IMG/VR virus record: IMGVR_UViG_3300024262_006558
Coordinates: 248,001 to 312,000 of that record
Reading direction: 5' to 3' (one strand)
Length of the DNA: 64,000 nt
Made by a program: the position numbers and the translations under genes. Every line of letters begins with the position of its first letter. Position 1 is the first letter of the stretch. The notes under the pieces are model-generated. The model did no database searches, was not told the origin of the DNA, and saw nothing but the letters and a program-made list of their open reading frames with translations. Positions 6,484-62,274 of the stretch are shown in pieces.

Positions 6484-6634
6484 AACAAAGGGGAAGAAAT
6501 TCCCCTTTTTGTTTCTCTGAGTTTTTCCGCAACTTCGTATACCTACATATTTCTATGTATCCATATGTGAAAAGCTGAAAAGTACATAATGTCCCCACCG
6601 CCGTATATATTGGTGAATCAAAAAAAACATCATT

Positions 6635-6880
6635 ATGGAAAAGGCTTGTATATCAATTATCGTAAAAAAGAATTTTAAAAAGACGCAAGGTGGGAGTATT
6701 GACGTACAATACGATACGCAAATGGGTGAACTTAAAATTGTTGAAATTGGAGATGCAATTGCAAGTTTGAATAAGTCTGCTACCGTTACTATAGAGTATT
6801 CAGTATTCAGTGAAATTTCAGGAACTTGGTTAGTACTTAGAAGTTACTATGCAAATGAAAAAAGATTAGTTAAACACTAA
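6635..6880 (+). CDS. hypothetical protein
   Basis: ORF track. Confidence 0.7.
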   Translation: MEKACISIIVKKNFKKTQGGSIDVQYDTQMGELKIVEIGDAIASLNKSATVTIEYSVFSEISGTWLVLRSYYANEKRLVKH

Positions 6881-6937: not shown

Positions 6938-7663
6938 ATGGAAAAGTTAAAATTTGGAAAAGGAAATGCGAAATTAGGTAAAAAGGTTATGACTTTCTCT
7001 TTGCCAGCAGGTTATTCTTGCCCTTTCGCAAAAGACTGTTTATCAAAAGCAGACAAAGATACTGGAACGTTAACCGATGGTAAACATACACAGTTTAGAT
7101 GTTTCAGCGCTTCTAGCGAATCTATTTATAAAAATACTCGCATAGCACGTTGGCACAATTACGATGCCTTAAAAGGGCTTAAAACGGAGCAAATGGCGGA
7201 GTTGATTAATGCTTCTATTCCAAAAAATACGGGCATGGTAAGAATACACGTTTCAGGAGACTTCTTTAATCAAGCTTACTTCGATGCTTGGATGTTAGTT
7301 GCAAATATTAATCCTGCAGTAGTATTCTATGCATACACTAAGAGCATTGGATATTGGGTAGAAAGATTAGGTTCAATTCCTGCTAACTTAAAATTAACTG
7401 CTTCATTCGGAGGTAAAAATGACAAGTTAATTGAAAAACATAACTTGAAATCTGCAAGAGTAGTATATTCTTATGCGGAGGCGGAAGAATTAGGCTTAGA
7501 AATTGACCATGACGATAGTCACGCATTCAAAACCGATTATAGTTTCGCGTTAATTATCCACGGTGGACAACCAAAAGGGTCTGCAGCTTCAAAAGCAAAG
7601 CAAGCTTTGAAAAAAGAAGGTTGGGAAGGTTACACTAAGAAAAACAAAAAGGCTGCAGCTTAG
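6938..7663 (+). CDS. GP88-like phage protein (radical-SAM-like fold)
   Basis: GNAKL, FSLPAGYSCPFAKDC...C, RIHVSGDF and FYAYTKS motifs typical of the gene-product-88 family. Confidence 0.75.
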   Translation: MEKLKFGKGNAKLGKKVMTFSLPAGYSCPFAKDCLSKADKDTGTLTDGKHTQFRCFSASSESIYKNTRIARWHNYDALKGLKTEQMAELINASIPKNTGMVRIHVSGDFFNQAYFDAWMLVANINPAVVFYAYTKSIGYWVERLGSIPANLKLTASFGGKNDKLIEKHNLKSARVVYSYAEAEELGLEIDHDDSHAFKTDYSFALIIHGGQPKGSAASKAKQALKKEGWEGYTKKNKKAAA

Positions 7664-7740: not shown

Positions 7741-7926
7741 ATGGATTCAATAATAAAGAAAGATAAGCAAAACCCTCAAAGTGGTTTTACTTTGCAATTT
7801 GGTGGTAAGAATCAAAACAGCTCAATTCAAATAGAAAGATTATCAGATCCAAAAATAACAGTTTGTTATAATGGATCAAAAAAAACTCTCTCCCTTGAGG
7901 AGTTAGCAAAGTTATTAGATCTCTAA
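7741..7926 (+). CDS. hypothetical protein
   Basis: ORF track; ATG just after the TATATTTG element. Confidence 0.6.
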   Translation: MDSIIKKDKQNPQSGFTLQFGGKNQNSSIQIERLSDPKITVCYNGSKKTLSLEELAKLLDL

Positions 7927-8253
7927 TAATTTCCGCAACTTCGTAAACCTTATACTTAAGCTCTCCCTATGTGGAGGGCTTTTTTTGTTTAGCTGAAAAG
8001 TAAACTTTCCTATAAGTACATAATATCCCCACCACCGTATATATTGGTGAATTAAAACTAAAATCTTTATGAATAGATTAAAATTAATAAACCAGTTAAT
8101 GTCAAGAAAAAATGGAAGAAGAAATATTTCACTCATACGATACTGAATACATAAAAGAATGTATCGAAAACGAAAGCTGAAAAATAAAGTTTTCCTATAA
8201 GTACATAATATCCCCATCACCGTATATATTAGTGAACGAAAACAAAACACATC

Positions 8254-8709
8254 ATGAAAAAGTATAGAGTAAAACTTACAAGCGAAAGCAATCATAGACA
8301 AGACCAAAAGGTTATCGACCCAAAGAATCCCGAATCAGGATTTTATCTTGGAGATGTTTATTCAGAAACGCCATCACTTTATAGTAGAGGTGAAGCAGTT
8401 AAAAAAGCAAAAACTTTCAATGGTAAGATTGAAGTATACAACGGAGCGTATCAAATTGTAGATGTTATCAGTGTTGCTCATGTACCTTATGACTCTTTAC
8501 CCGATGTAGTTAAAGCTGAGTTTGAAAAGCATTCTCCTTCCTTCCAAGATACGGATGAAACATTAGGAGAGCAAATGTTTTCTGTAGATGCAATCAAAGA
8601 AGAGGTAATTGCAGAGTGTAAAACTGAATCTACTAGAGTAGAGTTGAGAGAATTGTATGAGATTCTTAATGATGGTAGTTTCTGTTATGTTTCATTTATA
8701 AAAGCTTAA
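8254..8709 (+). CDS. hypothetical protein
   Basis: ORF track. Confidence 0.75.
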   Translation: MKKYRVKLTSESNHRQDQKVIDPKNPESGFYLGDVYSETPSLYSRGEAVKKAKTFNGKIEVYNGAYQIVDVISVAHVPYDSLPDVVKAEFEKHSPSFQDTDETLGEQMFSVDAIKEEVIAECKTESTRVELRELYEILNDGSFCYVSFIKA

Positions 8710-9266: not shown

Positions 9267-10148
9267 ATGGGATGCGACATTCACATCATTGCCGAAGTAA
9301 AGGAGAACGGAGTCTGGAAAAAGAACACCAACAAAGTTTTCCTTAATCCTTATTACGAAATGTATAAGGGCATTAAGGTGACAGACCCAGCTCGATACAA
9401 AGAAATCAAAAAGGGTAACTGGATAGACCTTAAAAAGTTTATGGATGAGCCTTCAAGTGGTAGAAATTACAATTGGTTTGCCGTTCTAGCCGATGTTAGA
9501 AATGGTAGAGGGTTCGCTGGAATAAAAACGGGTGAAGGCTTTGATCCAATTGCAGATCCTAAAGGTTTTCCTAGTGATGCTTCAAGAGAAACAATGGAGT
9601 TTCTTGGGATGGTCATTGACGACAACATGACTATGGATGATTACAAAGAAAATGGTGGAGAAATCGACTTAGGCAATGGGGATTATAAATACGTTTACCC
9701 TCGTTTAAAAATCATTGACTGGGGCTGTAAGTATCTCGATGAAGAAGAAACGATTGCGGAAAATGTTGACTACCATAGTTACTCATATTTCACCGCAAAA
9801 GAATTAGCCGAGTTTGATTGGAAAGGTAAAATGACTATGCTTAGAGGAACTATATCTTTAGAGCAATATAAATCTTTGCAAGAAAAAGGAGGAGAGCCAA
9901 CAGAAGGTTGGTGCGGTGCTTCTTGGGGCAAAGGTTTTGTCACCGTAGATGAAGACCAAGCCGATAAGATTTTGAAAGATGGCGTGGAGGGTACAGAGTT
10001 TGAAGGTAAAACTATTAAAGTAAATTATCATTGGATGGATGGTTACCACAAAATGTTTGAGCATGAATTGAAAACAATTGTTGAGCCATTAAAAAAGCTC
10101 TCCATGAAATATGAAGATGCAAGAATAGTATTTGCATTTGACAATTAA
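9267..10148 (+). CDS. conserved phage hypothetical protein (MGCDIH...RNYNWFAVLADVRN type)
   Basis: N-terminal MGCDIH motif, recognised from memory as recurrent in large phages. Confidence 0.8.
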   Translation: MGCDIHIIAEVKENGVWKKNTNKVFLNPYYEMYKGIKVTDPARYKEIKKGNWIDLKKFMDEPSSGRNYNWFAVLADVRNGRGFAGIKTGEGFDPIADPKGFPSDASRETMEFLGMVIDDNMTMDDYKENGGEIDLGNGDYKYVYPRLKIIDWGCKYLDEEETIAENVDYHSYSYFTAKELAEFDWKGKMTMLRGTISLEQYKSLQEKGGEPTEGWCGASWGKGFVTVDEDQADKILKDGVEGTEFEGKTIKVNYHWMDGYHKMFEHELKTIVEPLKKLSMKYEDARIVFAFDN

Positions 10149-13070: not shown

Positions 13071-13252
13071 TATCAAAACCTAGGGTAAAAACCTTAGGTT
13101 TTTTTATGATCACATCTCTCGGAGAATTTCCGCAACTTCGTATACCTACATATTTCTATGTACTCATATGTGAAAAGCTGAAAAACAAAGTTTTCCTATA
13201 AGTACATAATATCCCCCGCCCCGTATATATTGGTGAACAAAACAAAAAGCAC

Positions 13253-15913: not shown

Positions 15914-16498
15914 ATGGCAGCACCTAAAAAAAGTTACGCAGTACAACCTTCCTGTTATTCAGATAGAAAGGCGGACTATAAAGAGCAAGAATATCTGAAC
16001 GAAGCATTCGAAACTATCTCTCATGAGGAAATGTATGAAGAGATCGATGGTAAAGAAAAGAAAGGTTTCGGAGGAACTTGTGGAAACATAGCCTGGGAGA
16101 TCAATTTTTCCAGACCTAAAAGAAAAGTTCTGGTAAACATCACTCCAGGAAAAGAAAATATGTTGGACAAAGGAGAAGAAGCTGTCAGATCTTATCAGGT
16201 AATCTCATCAGCATTCATGCTTTACAGAATGATCTGTATGTTTCCGAATCCTATTGTAGAGATGCAGGGATCAGAAGGGTACAAAGTCCCATGGTCGATC
16301 GCGCTTAAACATAAAGAAACAGGAGAGTTCTTTATTATTCGTGAATGGAAAGGTGGATTATCTTTTGCATCAGATGCCCATTCATTCAAAGATACACCTG
16401 CAAGCTTCACTAATGATGTACAGCGATTGTTGCAGCTGTTAGTTAGCGACAAGTCACCACATCCTTATGATGGAGTAACAGCAGGAGGTGTAGCATAA
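15914..16498 (+). CDS. hypothetical protein
   Basis: ORF track. Confidence 0.75.
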   Translation: MAAPKKSYAVQPSCYSDRKADYKEQEYLNEAFETISHEEMYEEIDGKEKKGFGGTCGNIAWEINFSRPKRKVLVNITPGKENMLDKGEEAVRSYQVISSAFMLYRMICMFPNPIVEMQGSEGYKVPWSIALKHKETGEFFIIREWKGGLSFASDAHSFKDTPASFTNDVQRLLQLLVSDKSPHPYDGVTAGGVA

Positions 16499-16500
16499 AC

Positions 16501-16538
16501 AAAAAAACCCTCATCTAATTAAAGATGAGGGTTTTTTA
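16501..16538. terminator. bidirectional intrinsic terminator
   Basis: AAAAAAACCCTCATCT...AGATGAGGGTTTTTT between convergent units. Confidence 0.8.
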
Positions 16539-16570: not shown

Positions 16571-16671
16571 TGGGGGCGGAATAGATTCGAACTATCGACA
16601 CACTGGCTTTCACACCGAGCTGCTCTCAAGATCACGCCTCAAGGACGGATACCAAACTGAGCTACACCCCC
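16571..16671 (-). tRNA. non-canonical tRNA-like gene, copy 1 (Phe-like; D-loop hairpin insertion, 8-nt anticodon loop)
   Basis: Acceptor GGGGGTG/CGCCCCC, TAGCTCAGTTTGGT, GAGC, T-loop TTCGAAT; 23-nt insert in the D loop. Confidence 0.65.
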
Positions 16672-16697
16672 ATATAGAAAAAGCAAATTGCTTTTTG

Positions 16698-16797
16698 TGG
16701 GAACGGAATAGATTCGAACTATCGACACACTGGCTTTCACACCGAGCTGCTCTCAAGACTAACATCAAGTGTTAGCACCAGACTGAGCTACATTCCC
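16698..16797 (-). tRNA. non-canonical tRNA-like gene, copy 2
   Basis: Acceptor GGGAATG/CGTTCCC; same anticodon and T arms as copy 1; 22-nt D-loop hairpin. Confidence 0.65.
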
Positions 16798-16892
16798 ATG
16801 TAGTTAAAGATATAAAGGAAATTTGGAGAACTTGTTTTTTAATTTAAGATAATTTTTTAGAAGGAAGTCCAAGCATAGCCTTTAATCTTTTG

Positions 16893-16992
16893 TGGGAACG
16901 GAATAGATTCGAACTATCGACACACTGGCTTTCACACCGAGCTGCTCTCAAGACTAACATCAAGTGTTAGCACCAGACTGAGCTACATTCCC
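16893..16992 (-). tRNA. non-canonical tRNA-like gene, copy 3 (identical to copy 2)
   Basis: Direct 100-nt duplicate of 16698-16797. Confidence 0.65.
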
Positions 16993-17305
16993 ATATGTAA
17001 TAGGGGCTTATTTCGGATTTCATTCCGAGATAGATTCCCATATTAAGATTGTTGTTAAGAAGAAACCCTCTTGGTATCTTTATCCCTTATCAACAATACA
17101 AAAGTACTGTTTAAATATCATATTGTCAAGCATTAGATAGAAAAAAGTTTAAAAAGTTTTCTCTCCTCTGAGTTTTTCCGCAACTTCGTATACATAACCC
17201 TTTATCCATCAGACATTAAACTCAAAAAGCTGAAAAACAAAGTTTTCCTATAAGTACATAATATCCCCTCCACCGTATATATTGTCGAACGAAAAAGAAA
17301 CACTT

Positions 17306-18220
17306 ATGAAAATCTACTATAATCAATATAATATCGGTAAATCAAAGTATGTGGTAAAGCATCATGATGGTAAAAAAATCCATAAAGATGGAAGCAGGTT
17401 CTTTGATATTGCAATCTTTAGTAACAAAAAGAAACGCGACAGCTTTATAAAAGATCTGGAGGCGGATGGCTACACTCATAGAGATATGGCTATCAATACT
17501 TACTCTGGCTTAAAAAACAGAATTAAAGATTCTGATGTTGCTCGCTGGGTAATGACGTTCAATGAACCAGTAGTGATTAATAAGTTATCACGATATGGAA
17601 ATTGGAAAGAAAACGAAGATGGATCTAAATCTAAAAGCAAGAAAGCTAAAAAAACTTATAATGTATACTTACGCATTATCAATGGCAGCTTAACATATGC
17701 AGCAAGCAAAAAAGCTAGGTTTTGGAACTATGTAGAATTAGGTCTTCCTTTCTCTAAAATAGTAGACTTAAAACCACATATGTCAAAAACAGAAAAGATG
17801 TCCCCAGAAGAGTACAACAAAGCGGAATGTCAAAAGTTCATCAATAGATGTCATCCAAATATTTGGAATGAAATCAAAGAAGAATGTAAAATGTTCATAG
17901 AAACAGGGGACGAAGAACATCTTCCTAGCTTTATAAGATATAATGGCAAATGTAAGTTTGTTTCCATAAAAGGTAAAATGGGAGATTCTTATGCAGGGAA
18001 GCATACTATTGAAGCTTTGAAAAAAGCAATGGATGAGAATGGGGATTACAGAACATCATTTAGTGCTATGGCTCCACAAGGGAGAGATAGAAGTTTCTCT
18101 GTAGCAACTTCTAATGGAGAAACTAGGGCTTGGTTCTCATCGGAATTCCCTGGATGTGGAAATGGTGACTATTACTTACTAATAAATCCAACTACAGCAG
18201 TATTCTGTGAAAGAGATTAG
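17306..18220 (+). CDS. multidomain hypothetical phage protein
   Basis: N-terminal YNIGKSKYVVKHHDG...HKDGS.FFDIAIF; C-terminal SSEFPGCGNGDYYLLIN. Confidence 0.8.
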   Translation: MKIYYNQYNIGKSKYVVKHHDGKKIHKDGSRFFDIAIFSNKKKRDSFIKDLEADGYTHRDMAINTYSGLKNRIKDSDVARWVMTFNEPVVINKLSRYGNWKENEDGSKSKSKKAKKTYNVYLRIINGSLTYAASKKARFWNYVELGLPFSKIVDLKPHMSKTEKMSPEEYNKAECQKFINRCHPNIWNEIKEECKMFIETGDEEHLPSFIRYNGKCKFVSIKGKMGDSYAGKHTIEALKKAMDENGDYRTSFSAMAPQGRDRSFSVATSNGETRAWFSSEFPGCGNGDYYLLINPTTAVFCERD

Positions 18221-23241: not shown

Positions 23242-23448
23242 ATGAAAAAAGAAATCTTGTTTGAACTTAATCGCTTTGGTGATAGAAAATATTATCTTGA
23301 TGATGAACTCCATAGAGAAGATGGCCCAGCCGTTGAATATTCTAATGGAGATAAAGAGTGGCGCCTGAATGGTAAAGAATTAACCGAAGAAGAGTTTAAT
23401 AAGAAGATAACCGAATTGAATGTGTCTAAAATACACGAGCTATGGTAA
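23242..23448 (+). CDS. HREDGPA-repeat protein, array gene 1 (1 unit)
   Basis: 22-aa WxLNGKxHRxDGPA repeat (MORN-variant-like) plus tail ELTEEEFNKKITELNVSKIHELW. Confidence 0.8.
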   Translation: MKKEILFELNRFGDRKYYLDDELHREDGPAVEYSNGDKEWRLNGKELTEEEFNKKITELNVSKIHELW

Positions 23449-23855
23449 AGCAAGAACCTATATGTAAAACAACTGCCTATGGAGATAAGCATTGGTATCT
23501 CAATGGAAAGCAACATCGTGAAGATGGTCCAGCCGTTGAATGGGCTGATGGAACTAAATTCTGGTACCTCAATGGAAAACGCCATAGAGAAGATGGCCCA
23601 GCCGTTGAATATGCATATGGAACTAAAGCTTGGTGGATTAATGGAGAACTACATAGATTAGGAGGACCATCAGTCACTGATGAAGATGGTAAGTTCTGGT
23701 ACCTCAATGGAAAACGCCATAGAGAAGATGGTCCAGCCGTTGAATATAACGATGGAACTAAAGAATGGTTTCTTAATGGTAAAAAATTAACCGAAGAAGA
23801 GTTTAATAAGAAGATAACCGAATTGAATGTGTCTAAAATACATGAGCTATGGTAG
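23442..23855 (+). CDS. HREDGPA-repeat protein, array gene 2 (4 units)
   Basis: Same repeat and tail; 7-nt overlap with gene 1. Confidence 0.85.
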   Translation: MVKQEPICKTTAYGDKHWYLNGKQHREDGPAVEWADGTKFWYLNGKRHREDGPAVEYAYGTKAWWINGELHRLGGPSVTDEDGKFWYLNGKRHREDGPAVEYNDGTKEWFLNGKKLTEEEFNKKITELNVSKIHELW

Positions 23856-24127
23856 AACAGGAACCTATATGTAAAACAACTTCCGATGGAACTAAAAACT
23901 GGTTTCTGAATGGAAAGCATCATCGTGAAGATGGGCCAGCCGTTGAATATACTAATGGAGATAATCACTGGTTCCTTCATGGAAAACGCCATAGAGAAGA
24001 TGGTCCAGCTGTTGAATTAGCAGGTGGATATAAATATTGGTTCCTTCATGGTAAAGAATTAACCGAAGAAGAATTTAATAAGAAGATAACCGAATTGAAT
24101 GTGTCTAAAATACATGAGCTATGGTAG
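23849..24127 (+). CDS. HREDGPA-repeat protein, array gene 3 (2 units)
   Basis: MVEQEPICKTT head, IHELW tail. Confidence 0.85.
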   Translation: MVEQEPICKTTSDGTKNWFLNGKHHREDGPAVEYTNGDNHWFLHGKRHREDGPAVELAGGYKYWFLHGKELTEEEFNKKITELNVSKIHELW

Positions 24128-24399
24128 AACAGGAACCTATATGTAAAACAACTTCCGATGGAGATAAATGTTGGTACCTGAATGGAAAAAGGCATAGAGA
24201 AGATGGTCCAGCTATTGAATATGCCGATGGAGACAAAGAATGGTGCCTGAATGGAAAACGCCATAGAGAAGATGGTCCAGCTGTTGAATTAGCAGGTGGA
24301 TATAAATATTGGTTCCTTCATGGTAAAGAATTAACCAAAAAAGAGTTTAATAAAAAGATCTCCGAATTGAATGTGTCTAAAATACACGAGCTATGGTAG
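24121..24399 (+). CDS. HREDGPA-repeat protein, array gene 4 (2 units)
   Basis: Same head, repeat and tail. Confidence 0.85.
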   Translation: MVEQEPICKTTSDGDKCWYLNGKRHREDGPAIEYADGDKEWCLNGKRHREDGPAVELAGGYKYWFLHGKELTKKEFNKKISELNVSKIHELW

Positions 24400-24671
24400 A
24401 ACAGGAACCTATATGTAAAACAACTGCCGATGGAGATAAGCATTGGTATCTGAATGGAAAGCATCATCGTGAAGATGGTCCAGCTATTGAAAGGGTTAAT
24501 GGATCTAAATACTGGTATCTGAATGGAAAGCATCATCGTGAAGATGGTCCAGCTATTGAATATGCCAATGGAGATAAATACTGGTTTCTCAATGGTAAAG
24601 AATTAACCGAAGAAGAATTTAATAAGAAGATAACCGAATTGAATGTGTCTAAAATACACGAGCTATGGTAG
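24393..24671 (+). CDS. HREDGPA-repeat protein, array gene 5 (2 units)
   Basis: Same head, repeat and tail. Confidence 0.85.
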   Translation: MVEQEPICKTTADGDKHWYLNGKHHREDGPAIERVNGSKYWYLNGKHHREDGPAIEYANGDKYWFLNGKELTEEEFNKKITELNVSKIHELW

Positions 24672-25009
24672 AACAGGAACCTATATGTAGATTATTTCCA
24701 GATGGAACTAAACAATGGTACCTAAATAGAAAGCTTCATCGTGAAGATGGGCCAGCCGTTGAATATACTAATGGAGATAAATGTTGGTTTATTAATGATA
24801 AACTTCATAGATTAGATGGCCCAGCTGTGGAGTCTATTGGAGATAAGCAATGGTGTTTAAATGGAAAAAGACATCGTGAAGATGGCCCAGCTGTTGAATG
24901 TTCTGATGGAGATAAATTTTGGTTTCTTAATGGTAAAAAATTAACCGAAGAAAAATACAATGAAGAGATCGCTAAATTGAATGCATCTAAAATACATGAG
25001 TTATGGTAG
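24665..25009 (+). CDS. HREDGPA-repeat protein, array gene 6 (3 units)
   Basis: Same head, repeat and tail. Confidence 0.85.
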   Translation: MVEQEPICRLFPDGTKQWYLNRKLHREDGPAVEYTNGDKCWFINDKLHRLDGPAVESIGDKQWCLNGKRHREDGPAVECSDGDKFWFLNGKKLTEEKYNEEIAKLNASKIHELW

Positions 25010-25488
25010 AACAAGAACCTATATGTAAAACATGTTCCAATGGAGATAAAGAATGGTATCTCAATGGAAAACTACATAGAGTAGATGAGCCAGCTATTGA
25101 ATCTGCCAATGGACATAAACTATGGTATCTCAATGGAAAGCAACATCGTGAAGATGGTCCAGCTTGTGAATATGCCAATGGAGATAAATCTTGGTACCTG
25201 AATGGAGAAAGGCATAGAGAAGATGGTCCAGCTATTGAATCTGCCAATGGAGATAAATCTTGGTTCCTTCATGGAAAACGCCATAGAGAAGATGGTCCAG
25301 CTATTGAATCTGCCAATGGACATAAACTATGGTATCTCAATGGAAAAAGGCATAGAGTAGATGGTCCAGCCTGTGAATGGAGCAATGGAGACAAAGAATG
25401 GTTCCTTCATGGGAAAGAGTTAAGCGAAGAAGAATTTAATAAGAAGATCTCCGAATTGAATGCATCTAAAATACACGAGCTATGGTAA
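25003..25488 (+). CDS. HREDGPA-repeat protein, array gene 7 (5 units)
   Basis: Same head, repeat and tail. Confidence 0.85.
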   Translation: MVEQEPICKTCSNGDKEWYLNGKLHRVDEPAIESANGHKLWYLNGKQHREDGPACEYANGDKSWYLNGERHREDGPAIESANGDKSWFLHGKRHREDGPAIESANGHKLWYLNGKRHRVDGPACEWSNGDKEWFLHGKELSEEEFNKKISELNASKIHELW

Positions 25489-25567
25489 AAAGCTGAAAAG
25501 TTAACTTTCCTAAAAAGTACATAATTTCCCTGATGTTGTATATATTGGTGAATTTAGAATATAGATT

Positions 25568-28886: not shown

Positions 28887-29563
28887 AAAACTTTTTCTTT
28901 AAATTCTTCTTCTCTATGCCTTTCTCCATTCAGATACCAAGATTTATCTCCATTGGCACATTCAATAGCTGGACCATCTTCACGATGTTTTTCTCCATTC
29001 AGATACCAAGATTTATCTCCATTGGCACATTCAATAGCTGGACCATCTTCACGATGTTTTTCTCCATTCAGATACCAAGATTTAGATCCATTGGCATATT
29101 CAACGGCTGGACCATCTACTCTATGTCTTTCTCCATTCAGATACCATTCTTTTTGTCCATCGGCATATTCAACGGCTGGACCATCTACTCTATGTCTTTC
29201 TCCATTCAGATACCAATATTTAGATCCATCGGCATATTCAATGGCTGGACCATCTACTCTATGTCTTTCTCCATTGAGATACCAATATTTAGATCCATCG
29301 CTCCATTCAACGGCGGGTCCATCTTCTCTATGCCTTTCTCCATTAAAAAACCAATACTTATCTCCATCGGCATGTTCAATAGCTGGACCATCTTCTCTAT
29401 GCCTTTTTCCATTCAGGTACCAGTTAGTTATTTCATACTTAAACATATCTCCGAATTCTTTGGAGAAGATATCGGAATGGTATTCGAATTTATCCCAATC
29501 AATAGAGTCGGCATGTTCAATGCACCACTTTTCTCCTTTATCTATGTAATCATTGGCGATCAT
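28877..29563 (-). CDS. Trp module + HREDGPA repeats (7 full units)
   Basis: GEKWCIEHADSIDWDKF head, then 22-aa repeats. Confidence 0.85.
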   Translation of the reverse strand: MIANDYIDKGEKWCIEHADSIDWDKFEYHSDIFSKEFGDMFKYEITNWYLNGKRHREDGPAIEHADGDKYWFFNGERHREDGPAVEWSDGSKYWYLNGERHRVDGPAIEYADGSKYWYLNGERHRVDGPAVEYADGQKEWYLNGERHRVDGPAVEYANGSKSWYLNGEKHREDGPAIECANGDKSWYLNGEKHREDGPAIECANGDKSWYLNGERHREEEFKEKVLCT

Positions 29564-30215
29564 TGTATTTTTTTTCGGTTAATTCTTTTCCATTGAGATA
29601 CCATGATTTATCTCCATCGGCATATTCAATAGCTGGACCATCTTCTCTATGCCTTTTTCCATTGAGATACCATGATTTATCTCCATCGGCATATTCAATA
29701 GCTGGACCATCTTCTCTATGTAGATTTCCATTGAAATACCACTCTTTATGTCCATTGGCCCATTCAACGGCTGGCCCATCTAATCTATGCCTTTCTCCAT
29801 TAATCCACCATTCTTTATGTCCATTGGCAGATTCAATAGCTGGACCATCTTCACGATGATGCTTTCCATTCAGAAACCATTCTTTATATCCATTGACATA
29901 TTCAATAGCTGGTCCATCTAATCTATGCCTTTCTCCATTAATCCACCATTCTTTATGTCCATTGGCATATTCACAAGCTGGACCATCTACTCTATGCCTT
30001 TTTCCATTCAGGTACCATTCTTTGTCTCCATTGACTAATTCAACAGCTGGACCATTTTCTCTATGTAGTTCTCCTTTGGAGTTTTTCCATACAAACCTTA
30101 TAATTTCATATTTAAAGGTTTCAAAGAAATCTTTAGAGTAATAATTCATATCGCATTGGAATGAGTTCCAGTCGAATGAGTCGGCGTGCTTTATGATATA
30201 TTCTTCTGTTTGCAT
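29550..30215 (-). CDS. Trp module + HREDGPA repeats (7 units)
   Basis: TEEYIIKHADSFDW head. Confidence 0.85.
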   Translation of the reverse strand: MQTEEYIIKHADSFDWNSFQCDMNYYSKDFFETFKYEIIRFVWKNSKGELHRENGPAVELVNGDKEWYLNGKRHRVDGPACEYANGHKEWWINGERHRLDGPAIEYVNGYKEWFLNGKHHREDGPAIESANGHKEWWINGERHRLDGPAVEWANGHKEWYFNGNLHREDGPAIEYADGDKSWYLNGKRHREDGPAIEYADGDKSWYLNGKELTEKKYNDRQ

Positions 30216-30841
30216 TGAGTTCTTTGTTTAAAGTCTTCTTCGGTTACTCGTTTACCATTGAGATACCAGTGTTTAGATCCATTGTATTTAATTACAGCTG
30301 GTCCATCTTCTCTATGAAGTTCATCATTGATATACCAAAAATTATCTCCATTGGCATATTCACAGGCTGGACCATCTTCTCTATGTAGTTTTCCATTCAG
30401 GTACCAAAAATTATCTCCATTGGATTTAATTACAGCTGGCTCATCTACTCTATGCCTTTTCCCATTCAGATACCATTCTTTGTCTCCATCGCTCCATTCA
30501 CAGGCTGGACCATCTACTCTATGCCTTTTCCCATTCAGATACCATTCTTTGTCTCCATCGGCATATTCACAGGCTGGACCATCTACTCTATGCCTTTTTC
30601 CATTAATAAACCAATGCTTATCTCCATCGGCATATTCAATAGCTGGCCCATCTACCCTATGACATTTACCATTCAGATACCAATGTTTAATTTCACTTTT
30701 AAACTGTACAGCAAAGTCTGTTGAGAACTTATCTGCATGGTATTCGAATTTATCCCAATCAATCTTATCGGCATTATTAATACACCATTCTTCTCCTAGT
30801 ATAGTATAGTCTTCTGCATTAATATTATCCTGTGTATTCAT
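30191..30841 (-). CDS. Trp module + HREDGPA repeats (6 units)
   Basis: GEEWCINNADKIDW head. Confidence 0.85.
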   Translation of the reverse strand: MNTQDNINAEDYTILGEEWCINNADKIDWDKFEYHADKFSTDFAVQFKSEIKHWYLNGKCHRVDGPAIEYADGDKHWFINGKRHRVDGPACEYADGDKEWYLNGKRHRVDGPACEWSDGDKEWYLNGKRHRVDEPAVIKSNGDNFWYLNGKLHREDGPACEYANGDNFWYINDELHREDGPAVIKYNGSKHWYLNGKRVTEEDFKQRTQCKQKNIS

Positions 30842-30886
30842 TATATTCTCTATAGTAGTTGAAGTGTTATTCTCCTATGTAATATA

Positions 30887-31648
30887 TTAATTATCTATAG
30901 TTGAAGTTGTGTTTTCTAATTGGGGTTCTCCATGAATGTGCCAACGTTTATGTCCATCGACATATTCAACAGATGGACCATCTTCACGATGTCTTTTTCC
31001 ATTTAGCCACCAGGATTTAGTTCCATTGGCAGATTCAATGGCTGGACCATCTACTCTATGTCTTTCTCCATTGAGATACCAAGCTTTATCTCCATCGGCA
31101 TATTCAATGGCTGGACCATCTACTCTATGTCTTTCTCCATTGAGATACCAGTGATTATCTCCATTAGTATATTCAACGGCTGGCCCATCTTCACGATGTT
31201 TTTCTCCATTCAGATACCAAGCTTTATGTCCATCGCTCCATTCAACGGCGGGTCCATCTTCACGATGTTTTTCTCCATTCAGATACCAAGCTTTATCTCC
31301 ATCAGAACATTCAACGGCGGGTCCATCTAATCTATGCCTTTCTCCATTAAGAAACCATTCTTTATATCCATTGGCCCATTCAACGGCTGGCCCATCTTCT
31401 CTATGTCTTTCTCCATTCAGATACCATTCTTCATCTCCATCGCTCCATTCAACGGCGGGTCCATCTTCTCTATGAAGCTTTCCATTCAGATACCAGTTAG
31501 TTATTTCATATCTAAACATTTCACCGAATTCTTTGGAGAAGATATCGGCATGATATTCAAATACATCCCAATCAATATTATCTGCATTAGCGATACACCA
31601 TTTTTCTCCTTTAGTTATATGGAAATTGTTTTCTAAGTTAATAGCCAT
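30887..31648 (-). CDS. Trp module + HREDGPA repeats (8 units)
   Basis: GEKWCIANADNIDW head. Confidence 0.85.
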   Translation of the reverse strand: MAINLENNFHITKGEKWCIANADNIDWDVFEYHADIFSKEFGEMFRYEITNWYLNGKLHREDGPAVEWSDGDEEWYLNGERHREDGPAVEWANGYKEWFLNGERHRLDGPAVECSDGDKAWYLNGEKHREDGPAVEWSDGHKAWYLNGEKHREDGPAVEYTNGDNHWYLNGERHRVDGPAIEYADGDKAWYLNGERHRVDGPAIESANGTKSWWLNGKRHREDGPSVEYVDGHKRWHIHGEPQLENTTSTIDN

Positions 31649-31651
31649 AAT

Positions 31652-32374
31652 CTATTTTGTATTTTCTATATCATCTAGATTATCTATGGTTACGGTTATT
31701 TCTCTAAAGACTCTTTTGTTACTATAGTTAGTTTCTCTGGTTTCCAGTATTCTAGCGCTTGGATATTTACTGGTTAGTAATTTAGAAAGTGCTTCGAAGT
31801 TTTTATCTGATGCTATTGTTTGGTTATCATCATTAAAAGACAGGCCGACTTTTTCCAGGTCTACTTTCTTTTCTTCTATGGTCTTACCTTTATCTCTATA
31901 CGGATCGCATAGCATACCTGAAAGGGTAAGGTTTATTCTACCTGATTGTCCAATGGAGAATTCCTTTATATGTCCTAGTCCTTCTAAGTTCCACCACATC
32001 CAGATATCATCATAGATATTCTTTATTCTTTCTCTAGCGTCTTCGTTGGTTACTTTGTTGCCCAGTTGTTTTCTAAGATCCCTGTTCTCGATGTTCAGGG
32101 ATCTTATCTCTGAGTATCGTTCTTTATTTTGTTGGTCTAGTACCCCTTCATAACCTAAAGTCTTCTGTAATTCTAGAACATAGTGTTCCGAAAGGGATAA
32201 CTGAGTTGCTTTCATTCCTTCAGTAAGTTTACCCGCTTTCAGTTGAGAGTGAAGATGTCCTATGTTAAATTTAATGTCATTATAGGATTTCTCTATAGCT
32301 TTTAGAAGATCTCCTTTGGGATCTTCTACAAGCGTTGTGTCTTCTTTATCAAATGTTAATTGTCTATCTTTCAT
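31652..32374 (-). CDS. hypothetical coiled-coil phage protein
   Basis: ORF track. Confidence 0.75.
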   Translation of the reverse strand: MKDRQLTFDKEDTTLVEDPKGDLLKAIEKSYNDIKFNIGHLHSQLKAGKLTEGMKATQLSLSEHYVLELQKTLGYEGVLDQQNKERYSEIRSLNIENRDLRKQLGNKVTNEDARERIKNIYDDIWMWWNLEGLGHIKEFSIGQSGRINLTLSGMLCDPYRDKGKTIEEKKVDLEKVGLSFNDDNQTIASDKNFEALSKLLTSKYPSARILETRETNYSNKRVFREITVTIDNLDDIENTK

Positions 32375-32894
32375 TATATTTTTCTTCGGTTAATTGTTTA
32401 CCATTCAGATACCACTCTTTATTTCCATCGGCATTTTCAATAGCTGGACCATCTAATCTATGCCTTTCTCCGTTGAGATACCAATATTTAGATCCATTGG
32501 CAGATTCAACAGCTGGGCCATCTAATCTATGACATTTACCATTGATATACCAATATTTAGATCCATCGTTCCATTCAATAGCTGGCTCATCTACTCTATG
32601 CTTCTTTCCATTCAGGTACCAGTATTTATCTCCATTGTCCAATTCCATAGCTGGGCCATCTAATCTATGACATTTACCATTGATATACCAGTATTTAGAT
32701 CCATTGTCAGATTCAATAGCTGGACCATCTACTCTATGGAATTTACCATCTGGGTTTTTACAAACATAAACTAGTATTTCATCTTTAAAGTCATCGGCAA
32801 ATTCCTTTGAATAGGTATTCATATCGCATTGGAATGAGTCCCAATCGAAAGAGTCGGCGTGCTTTATGATATATTCTTCTGAATACTTTTCCAT
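32364..32894 (-). CDS. Trp module + HREDGPA repeats (5 units)
   Basis: SEEYIIKHADSFDW head. Confidence 0.85.
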   Translation of the reverse strand: MEKYSEEYIIKHADSFDWDSFQCDMNTYSKEFADDFKDEILVYVCKNPDGKFHRVDGPAIESDNGSKYWYINGKCHRLDGPAMELDNGDKYWYLNGKKHRVDEPAIEWNDGSKYWYINGKCHRLDGPAVESANGSKYWYLNGERHRLDGPAIENADGNKEWYLNGKQLTEEKYNER

Positions 32895-47370: not shown

Positions 47371-47386
47371 AATAATATTTTATTTG

Positions 47387-47531
47387 CAGAGAAGATAGGC
47401 CTCGAACCTACAAGGATTTAAAGAAATAATCTCCAACTATTCACGTTTATAGTTTGTCCACCGAGTTCCCCCACTCTATACGTTTCTTCAAGGGTACTGT
47501 CAGCGTGGTTGCCAAATTTCACCACTTCTCT
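47387..47531 (-). tRNA. tRNA-like gene with Leu/Ser-type D arm and enlarged central region; anticodon undefined
   Basis: Acceptor AGAGAAG/CTTCTCT, TGGTGAAATTTGGCAACCAC, T arm GTAGG-TTCGAGG-CCTAT; 145 nt long. Confidence 0.55.
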
Positions 47532-47538
47532 ATTTTTG

Positions 47539-47672
47539 CGTTCTCGGCAGGACTCGAACCTGCAACCCCCTGTTTGGAAATGTAGAAGGAAGACTTGAAC
47601 ATAGCCAATGGTCTTAGGTAATTGTCATGTCTAAACGATAGACAGGTGCTCTACCAGTTGAGCTACGAGAAC
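47539..47672 (-). tRNA. tRNA-Gly(UCC)-like gene interrupted by a 61-nt insertion in the anticodon loop
   Basis: GTTCTCG/CGAGAAC acceptor, GCTC/GAGC D stem, CCTGT-CT-[61 nt, 47579-47639]-TCC-AA-ACAGG, GCAGG-TTCGAGT-CCTGC. Confidence 0.75.
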
Positions 47673-61330: not shown

Positions 61331-62274
61331 TTCTTGTTATGTTTTAATTTTATCTTTTCTATGTTCTTAGTTCCTAGATAATCTATAGAGTCTCCACTTT
61401 TAGAATGGCTTCCTCCACTTCTTTCTAGTTGTAATTGCTCTAAAGATTCTGCGGCTTTAATTATCTCTGCATGATTAGCAGGTTTCTTATTAGAAGATGT
61501 AGGGATTAACTTCAATCTAGGCTCTGGAACATAAGAATCCTTTATAGTTTTTATTATATGATCAGGATAAGATTTAAACTCCTCTGAATTAAAACTGGAA
61601 TACTCTATATATACTCCTTTTCCTCTCCAAAAAGCATCCATAAAGAAATGAGTTAACTGATCCATGAAAACTAATTCCATACTCCAGCTTATTTCTATGC
61701 AGTCTTGTATTAACAATCCTAAATCATAACGATTCATTCTTAGGAACTTTTTAAATAGTTCAGCGTCCTCGCTCTCCATTATCTTTCCTAAGAACTTAGT
61801 GACTCTCTTTTGCTTATATTCAAATTCTTGAGTAGTTACTTCTTTAAATCTTTTCAAATACGACTTTTCTATAAGCCCGTTTTCTTTCAAGAAAGTATAC
61901 ACTGGAGTAAAATAAGATTTTCTATGTTGTGCAAACAGCAGCTCTTCACCACTTCTTCCAAACATAGAAAAATTATAGATAGTTTCACTATCCACAAGAT
62001 CTCCATTAAGCATTTCAATATAACAAACAGGAGTTCCGCTGTTAGCATTTATCAATACAAAAGAATTATATTTACCTAAAGCATGTCTAGCTGTATCAAT
62101 GTCTTCCCAGTGATTTTCCAAATATAATCCATACATTAGATAAGCTTCTAATGTTAATGGCTTTACTAATTGCAAATCATTTTCTTCTATCTCAAGAGCT
62201 ATTTGATAATCTTGATCCTGGACTAGTTCTATTTTATCAAAGAAGGATTCATTTTTATCTTGTTCTGAGATCAT
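61327..62274 (-). CDS. hypothetical protein
   Basis: ORF track. Confidence 0.7.
   Translation of the reverse strand: MISEQDKNESFFDKIELVQDQDYQIALEIEENDLQLVKPLTLEAYLMYGLYLENHWEDIDTARHALGKYNSFVLINANSGTPVCYIEMLNGDLVDSETIYNFSMFGRSGEELLFAQHRKSYFTPVYTFLKENGLIEKSYLKRFKEVTTQEFEYKQKRVTKFLGKIMESEDAELFKKFLRMNRYDLGLLIQDCIEISWSMELVFMDQLTHFFMDAFWRGKGVYIEYSSFNSEEFKSYPDHIIKTIKDSYVPEPRLKLIPTSSNKKPANHAEIIKAAESLEQLQLERSGGSHSKSGDSIDYLGTKNIEKIKLKHNKK

Follow-up and report, generated by a model that had tools for sequence, protein, structure and literature searches.

Three tRNA-like genes with an extra arm

We analyzed a 64,000-nucleotide (nt) stretch of DNA (the window), positions 248,001 to 312,000 of the IMG/VR record IMGVR_UViG_3300024262_006558 (388,594 bp), which carries three tandem tRNA-like genes on its minus strand at window positions 16571–16992. 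The window is also contained in JGI Ga0210003_1000004 (494,080 bp), and both sequences are identical to the window where they overlap it. The best-matching DNA run is a subsurface metagenome, and the source is a very large phage of roughly 0.39–0.49 Mb. Comparison with related loci indicates that the three genes belong to a conserved family of RNAs that derive from tRNA-Phe(GAA), carry a fifth arm in the D loop, and are specific to one phage clade.

The genes are flanked by a convergent open reading frame (ORF; 15914–16498) and a divergent one (17282–18220), both on the plus strand. An initial annotation of the locus, made from the letters alone, had already noted that the minus-strand genes lie in an otherwise plus-strand region, and the promoter and terminator that it assigned to them were likewise recovered. 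All elements of the operon lie on the minus strand. A promoter-like site identified by pattern matching (17099–17129) consists of TTGACA (17124–17129), a 17-nt spacer, and TACTTTTG (17099–17106), and is separated from copy 1 by a 106-nt leader (16993–17098), which was aligned with the related contig L004. Copy 1 (16893–16992; 100 nt) is followed by the 95-nt spacer 1 (16798–16892; alignment A1 and the loose end of a contig, X4), copy 2 (16698–16797; 100 nt), the 26-nt spacer 2 (16672–16697), and copy 3 (16571–16671; 101 nt). Downstream lies an intrinsic terminator (16502–16537), a palindrome whose 15-pair stem leads into a run of T and which also faces the convergent ORF. We recognize in the promoter-like site, the three copies, and the terminator a self-contained, transcription-unit-like operon.

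Copies 1 and 2 have the same 100-nt sequence; the 101 nt of copy 3 differ from it only at acceptor positions 4–5/68–69 and in the D-loop hairpin. All three copies share their last 51 nt at the 3′ end without a difference, where chance would give 0 matches. The two acceptor stems, GGGAATG/CGTTCCC and GGGGGTG/CGCCCCC, differ by compensatory changes at positions 4–5/68–69, bearing out the covariation first noted there. The 5′ half of each copy comprises an acceptor strand GGGRRUG, U8-A9, the D stem strand GCUC, a loop of AGUYUGGU, hairpin, and CUUGA, then the D stem strand GAGC and A26. Including its hairpin (16953–16971, 16758–16776, and 16631–16650 in copies 1, 2, and 3), the D loop is 32–33 nt long. 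The anticodon arm (16924–16942, 16729–16747, and 16602–16620) is the same in all three copies, G-C-U-(C)-G-G / UGUGAAAG / C-C-A-G-U, with a bulged base in the stem and an 8-nt loop. It is followed by a variable loop GUGUC and a T arm GAUAG-UUCGAAU-CUAUU. One extra C, missed in the initial annotation, lies between the T stem and the 3′ strand of the acceptor (between positions 65 and 66), a register supported by the covariation at 4-69 and 5-68. A73 is followed by CAA, and CCA is not encoded.

These genes escape standard tRNA detection. ARAGORN, one of the programs named for this in the initial annotation, reported no tRNA gene in the whole window in a standard run, and the Rfam tRNA model RF00005 scored copies 1 and 3 at 19.7 and 21.7 bits, below the gathering score of 29. 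Its alignment of the window copies contains a 27-nt insertion in the D loop and 13 nt instead of the expected 11 in the anticodon hairpin. The cloverleaf helices are nevertheless present (acceptor stem of 7 bp, D stem of 4 bp, and T stem of 5 bp with a 7-nt T loop; 95.8–99% of cells pair, and the acceptor, anticodon, and T stems show compensatory changes), the departures from canonical geometry being the size of the D loop, the anticodon-stem bulge, the 8-nt loop, and the extra C. Because standard tRNA finders overlook genes of this kind, counts of phage tRNAs may be too low.

Apart from these departures, the RNAs closely resemble bacterial tRNA-Phe(GAA), with which they share the 7-bp acceptor, U8-A9, the GCUC/GAGC D stem, G18G19, A26, U33-GAA-A37, the 5-nt variable loop GUGUC, the T loop UUCGAAU, and A73. 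They differ from it in having a hairpin-bearing D loop where an ordinary one has 7–11 nt and, in the window lineage, in the stem bulge, 8-nt loop, and extra C. Models for tmRNA, YrlA/Y RNA, viral tRNA-like structures, and drum RNA gave no match at gathering or E-value thresholds, and in the full-text literature we found no tRNA of a phage or bacterium described as having a hairpin in its D loop. No described RNA family (Rfam) or paper (full-text literature) was found to match them, which supports the novelty claimed in the initial annotation, and we regard the genes as encoding a real tRNA variant, apparently undescribed, that descends from bacterial tRNA-Phe.

Relatives and evidence for selection

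A pattern scan of JGI metagenomes yielded one true relative, L004 (Ga0114919_10031703), which has three copies in the same promoter–copies–terminator layout and flanking genes with 70–83% protein identity to window genes at 8.2–10.2 kb. A covariance model (R1) built from the window and L004 copies scores copies 1 and 3 at 103.5 and 105.9 bits. Contigs L020 and L021 were obtained via homologs of a neighboring gene for a 312-amino-acid (aa) protein and then scanned with R1, which matched L020 at 1236–1328 and 1127–1218 and L021 at 1703–1796 (51–57 bits); L021 also has a truncated copy (1628–1688). Related or near-identical copies occur in contigs of four other public runs, one of them an RNA library. 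X4, from a sediment run, carries a near-identical copy 1, and X10, from a marine metatranscriptome, spans copy 3, a spacer, and part of copy 2.

The family appears to be rare and restricted to a single phage clade. A blastn search of GenBank phages in distant mode gave no match, and pattern scans of IMG/VR returned only the window's own contig or chance matches rejected by R1. Seven contigs with homologs of the 312-aa neighbor (L019 and L032–L037) have no family member. Six matches in a scan of a species-genome collection were discarded as chance matches within GC-rich coding sequence, as was an R1 match at window 61559–61662 that lies inside an ORF and is not tRNA-like. A 34-bit match on L018 (9858–9947, plus strand) is a different odd tRNA-like gene, not clearly of this family. 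The position of the operon is not fixed: two TARA contigs (L016 and L017) with the closest marine homolog of ORF 15914–16498 (89% identical) retain the terminator-like hairpin, but a convergent protein gene follows it instead of the operon (regions L016 4088–4265 and L017 2668–2838). In L004, the operon adjoins a homolog of window gene 8254–8709.

The tRNA-like cores are far more conserved than the genes around them. Outside the D loop, the window copy W1 and the L004 copy L004a are 95.7% identical, their three differences being the bulge base and one compensatory T-stem pair, whereas nearby homologous genes of the window and L004 share 68–72% nucleotide identity. Similarly, the cores of L020b and L021a are 97% identical and the adjacent gene 65%. 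In the 8 distinct sequences, standard pairs occupy 95.8% of the pair cells, and 13 cells have changed on both sides. None of 500 shuffles reached the observed pairing and covariation, and slid controls were 33–46% paired. Pair 29-41 occurs in four Watson–Crick types (U-A, G-C, A-U, and C-G), and the wobble pairs U6-G67 and G27-U43 are invariant. An equivalent terminator is found downstream of the L004, L020, and L021 operons, and a TAnnTTTG block can be aligned ahead of each of the four operons, although by itself this motif shows no enrichment across the window (83 matches, with 88 expected). From these alignments we conclude that the cloverleaf helices and the extra hairpins are maintained by compensatory change. 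The conservation of the cores relative to their neighbors, the compensatory helix changes, and the conserved promoter and terminator together indicate that the genes are not pseudogenes, which the initial annotation had also held, and that pseudogene decay is excluded. The covariance model and relatives for which it had called thus revealed no random decay without covariation.

Family members are tRNA-Phe(GAA) derivatives with 19–23 extra nt that form one or two hairpins in a D loop of about 27–33 nt. Copies 1 and 2 have as their insert a 7-bp hairpin located 3′ of G19-U20 (GCUAACA-CUUGA-UGUUAGU), and at the same site copy 3 has AUCCGUC-CUUGA-GGCG(U)GAU, which also folds. The X10 relative, whose sequence was rebuilt from listed differences and is approximate (at least two differences are not shown), has there a GCUUGU/ACAAGU stem with a CUAGA loop, making three different 6–7-bp stems across the window and X10. 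In another contig, X3, the indels of copy 2 cluster in the D-loop hairpin. The insert of L004, L020, and L021 is instead located 5′ of G18, after A14-G15, and forms two UUCG mini-hairpins with compensatory stem changes (CUUC/GAAG, CCC/GGG, and UCC/GGA in the first; CC/GG and UCU/AGA in the second). The two insertion sites, 16/17 and 20/20a, lie on either side of G18G19 in the "variable pocket" of tRNAs, which forms the outer corner of the L-shaped fold. Position 20 at the L corner is read by the Escherichia coli phenylalanyl-tRNA synthetase (PheRS) (PMC9976931).

The initial annotation considered the structure of the D-loop hairpin to be selected and its CUUGA loop to be kept. The former is upheld, as both window forms fold and the relatives compensate, but the loop is CUAGA in X10 and UUCG elsewhere. 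The conserved trait is a small stable helix at the elbow, with sequence, loop, and exact site free to vary; the extra arm is under selection for shape rather than sequence. Two other interpretations of the hairpin were rejected, namely a second anticodon arm (the loop has 5 nt and no U33 register, and is UUCG in relatives) and a mobile mini-element (the hairpin sequences are found nowhere else in the window or loci).

Only the window, L004, and X10 combine a bulged anticodon stem with the 8-nt loop and the extra C; among them the bulge base is C or A, and one pair has changed from U-A to G-C. The anticodon arms of L020 and L021 are ordinary 5-bp/7-nt structures (GCCGU-GUGAAAA-GCGGU and GCAAA-UUGAAAC-CUUGU), so that the irregular arm described in the initial annotation is real in the window copies but is not a general trait. 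The window copies fall below the canonical tRNA score, whereas L020 and L021 members exceed it (39–43 bits) despite D-loop inserts of 24–26 nt. Every member has some irregularity in the T stem or at the T/acceptor junction, of three kinds; the T stem of L020a contains a bulged U, and in L020b and L021a pairs 50-64 and 51-63 are tandem U-U mismatches. The family-wide trait is therefore the D-loop insert combined with a T-stem irregularity, not the 8-nt anticodon loop.

Invariant in all members are G1-G3/C70-C72 (one L004 copy has a G3-A70 mismatch), U8-A9, the D stem, G18G19, A26, U33-G34-A35-A36-A37, the T loop, and A73. Four of these, G34, A35, A36, and A73, make up the universal set of Phe identity elements (PMC9976931), and they are unchanged in 8 of 8 distinct sequences. 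The variable or damaged parts are the T-stem pairs that tune binding to elongation factor Tu (EF-Tu), the T/acceptor junction and, in the window lineage, the geometry of the anticodon arm; EF-Tu affinity is set by pairs 49-65, 50-64, and 51-63 (PMC3239215).

Candidate roles of the five-armed RNAs

We tentatively favor, at close to even probability, the interpretation that these RNAs are mimics of tRNA-Phe and not ordinary elongators, serving either as a decoy or sponge or as a carrier of Phe off the ribosome. Maturation would involve cleavage by RNase P and by an enzyme that processes the 3′ end, followed by addition of CCA, since none is encoded. The RNA is predicted to fold as an L with an extra arm at its elbow. 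It would probably still be recognized as tRNA-Phe, most likely by PheRS, given the invariant G1-G3, D arm, G18G19, U33–A37, and A73. With the parts read by EF-Tu and the ribosome disturbed in each member, it should be a poor ordinary decoder, and it is this combination of retained Phe identity and disturbed EF-Tu and ribosome contacts that points to a mimic. As a decoy or sponge, such an RNA could occupy a factor directed at tRNA-Phe, for example a host tRNA-directed defense nuclease or modifier; alternatively, it may carry Phe off the ribosome for a tRNA-dependent transferase. The three tandem copies behind one predicted strong promoter suggest high expression and a dosage-dependent role.

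Both versions of the mimic have partial precedents. The tRNAs diverted to nonribosomal transferases show weaker EF-Tu binding (PMC3239215; PMC2175331), and they, like the staphylococcal nonproteinogenic tRNA-Gly, resemble the present family in occurring as extra isoacceptor copies that keep synthetase identity and have altered T-stem features (PMC3239215; PMC2175331). These tRNAs lack an extra arm, however, have G18G19 replaced, and have a known partner transferase. Anti-defense tRNAs of phages include T5 tRNA-Lys against PARIS, T5 tRNA-Tyr against retron/Septu PtuAB, and mycobacteriophage tRNAs (PMC11464382; PMC11555353; PMC10264068), and such loci can undergo gene amplification (PMC13096335). 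They too are phage-encoded variants with altered anticodon stem-loops, but are otherwise canonical decoders for which no D-loop arm has been described, and no tRNA-Phe-directed defense is linked to the family.

Several observations weigh against the tRNA-Phe mimic. No partner nuclease, transferase, or phage PheRS was found among the 64 window ORFs and the neighboring genes, and processing, CCA addition, charging, and exclusion from the ribosome are steps that we infer. Apart from the insert, the L020 and L021 members score as ordinary tRNAs and could simply be working ones. Long variable arms demonstrate that ribosomes tolerate some extra arms, and weak T stems are normal for tRNA-Phe bodies, Phe itself binding EF-Tu well. 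Finally, G18G19 is retained in the family, whereas it is replaced in the staphylococcal tRNA-Gly.

The alternative that we take most seriously, although we consider it unlikely, is a working elongator tRNA-Phe in which the arm is tolerated and perhaps acts as a shield from tRNA-cleaving defenses or as a mark for phage factors, and which in the window and L004 would be a SufJ-like +1 decoder of UUY-N quadruplets that recodes phage genes in a programmed way. It accommodates the Rfam scores of the L020 and L021 members and their canonical GAA arms with U33 and A37, and it draws on documented phage tRNAs that evade anticodon nucleases through anticodon-loop changes (PMC10264068; PMC11464382). In the window, L004, and X10, the loop UGUGAAAG, with U33-GAA-A37 on its 3′ side, holds 8 nt instead of 7 through an insertion on the 5′ side of the anticodon, which is the architecture of SufJ. 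SufJ binds the A site and causes +1 frameshifting, but is a laboratory mutant of tRNA-Thr with a normal body (PMC4238358), whereas the present RNAs are natural, conserved, and have a stem bulge and a D-loop arm. The frameshift-type tRNA suggested in the initial annotation thus has a precedent, but would apply to one lineage only, since a function shared by the family cannot depend on an 8-nt loop that is absent in L020 and L021. Nor was a split or frameshifted gene noticed in a nonexhaustive survey of the window ORFs, in which no systematic search was made. Against elongation in general stand the T-stem or junction defect of every member, to which the window lineage adds a stem bulge beside its 8-nt loop, and the lack, to our knowledge, of any functional or decoding tRNA with a D-loop hairpin. 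An improbable further reading is a phage-private orthogonal tRNA-Phe with the arm as a handle, which would be charged and then either decode UUY-N quadruplets or donate Phe to a phage enzyme. If true, no natural five-armed tRNA whose function depends on a D-loop hairpin would have preceded it, and +1 decoding at UUY-N would gate phage gene expression.

Still less probable is that the genes encode ordinary tRNA-Phe precursors from which the D-loop hairpin is excised, the halves being rejoined or left nicked, even though removing the insert leaves textbook D loops (AGUCUGGUGA and AGUUGGUUA) and other insert-bearing tRNAs occur in the clade (a tRNA-Gly(UCC) in the window and genes on L021). A bulge-helix-bulge motif has two 3-nt bulges separated by a 4-bp helix, and a group I core has about 200 nt or more and usually sits in the anticodon loop. 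Neither is present: no bulge-helix-bulge was found at the insert borders, the inserts folding as plain hairpins, no group I core can be contained in 19–23 nt, and no Rfam intron or ribozyme family matches the D-loop inserts. Archaeal pre-tRNAs also have the D loop of a recognizable tRNA interrupted, but by bulge-helix-bulge introns removed by EndA (PMC4090602; PMC3241643) rather than by simple hairpins with UUCG or CUNGA loops, and here a sigma-70-family factor encoded in the window points to a bacterial host. Contigs from the RNA library retain the hairpin and no read joint skips it, which is weak evidence given possible DNA carry-over. Excision would repair neither the anticodon arm nor the extra C, and the UUCG tetraloops look chosen for stability, not removal. 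The intron-containing precursor raised in the initial annotation is accordingly disfavored. We think it very improbable that the genes are mainly processing punctuation, with cuts by RNase P and the 3′ enzyme freeing a spacer RNA or allowing expression of a micro-ORF in spacer 1. Spacer 1 does contain blocks, GGCTATG...CTTCCTTCTA and AAAAACAAG, that are kept in L004 and an X4 contig, and the block AAGGCTATG-(6 nt)-CTTCCTTCTA has a constant possible reading frame of 10–21 codons (M-x-x-L-P-S-K/T), so that the blocks may represent a micro-ORF, a small RNA, or a processing signal. They are absent from the L020 and L021 operons, however, where spacers are 14–17 nt long and unconserved; conservation is far stronger in the tRNA-like cores than between them, and punctuation needs neither Phe identity nor an extra arm. 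Decaying tRNA pseudogenes or duplication leftovers, to which the failure of standard finders to accept the window copies, the truncated L021 copy, and the acceptor mismatch in one L004 copy might be ascribed, receive almost no credence beside cores that are 96–97% identical where neighboring genes are 65–72% identical, compensatory changes in all variable helices and inserts, and the conserved promoter and terminator.

The architecture of tRNA is among the most conserved designs in biology. A hairpin kept by compensatory evolution in very large phages, and re-created across G18G19, suggests that this corner of the tRNA is able to bear a selectable extra arm. It is also a pointer to a phage–host interaction, whether evasion of defense, sequestration of a tRNA-Phe-specific factor, or nonribosomal use of Phe-tRNA, and the five-armed design could inform engineered orthogonal tRNAs and tRNA scaffolds.

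Neighboring features and other tRNA-like genes

A ~54-nt segment of the leader (16997–17050) is missing from L004, and the X3 contig skips 16996–17051. It includes AUGGGAAUCUAUC, which is similar to the start of a copy, and the segment may be a remnant of a partial duplication. This segment also yields a match to drum RNA, which at 25.2 bits stays below the gathering score of 43 and was judged to be chance, being absent in L004 and X3, and no connection between drum RNA and tRNAs was found in the drum RNA literature.

Among the 64 window ORFs, Pfam identified a sigma-70-family factor, ten ankyrin-repeat proteins, NDK, CinA, a DnaQ-like exonuclease, and PcfJ; six ORFs match DUF6745. A crude check of the window for stop-codon recoding gave no clear signal. 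The neighboring protein (17282–18220) had no informative family, structure, or atlas match. In two contigs without the operon, a homolog of the N-end-rule adaptor ClpS (L033 6738–7052 and L034 4194–4508) lies two genes upstream of a distant homolog of the 312-aa neighbor. Phe-tRNA supplies the N-end rule pathway through L/F-transferase; the nearness of ClpS to the homolog of the 312-aa gene is probably a coincidence.

Insert-bearing tRNAs seem, from the genes collected here, to be a trait of the phage clade. A tRNA-Gly(UCC) on the minus strand of the window (47538–47672; 55.6 bits with Rfam) has a 61–66-nt insert in the anticodon loop next to U33 and is found by ARAGORN only in intron mode. 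No ribozyme or intron family matches this insert, and a group I intron would have to be longer. Directly downstream, also on the minus strand, lies a tRNA-like gene (47386–47531) with the acceptor AGAGAAG/CUUCUCU, a class-II-type 3-bp D arm, a good T arm, and ~50 extra nt in mid-gene; its identification by ARAGORN as Phe(GAA) with a 54-nt intron is doubtful. L021 has unusual tRNA genes on the plus strand at 6739–6811, 7473–7573, and 7760–7873. Among the odd tRNAs of L021 and L018, one has an anticodon loop CGAAAAG and is called Phe(AAA) by ARAGORN, and one has a 52-nt insert in the anticodon region; in the L018 gene at 9858–9947 the anticodon/variable region is unreadable.

An intergenic element of ~80–90 nt occurs on the plus strand at 17225–17303, 8173–8260, 13173–13252, and 6514–6581 (89–93% identity), upstream of several plus-strand genes, and is probably a shared promoter or 5′-untranslated region module. 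Many contigs from other metagenomes pile up at 17252–17295. Elsewhere in the window, repeated DNA with 76–90% identity is found at about 23300–25500 (plus strand) and 28900–32650 (minus strand), with a tandem period of ~272 bp in the 23.3–25.5 kb region, and the inverted copies lie inside a run of minus-strand ORFs of 216–253 aa.

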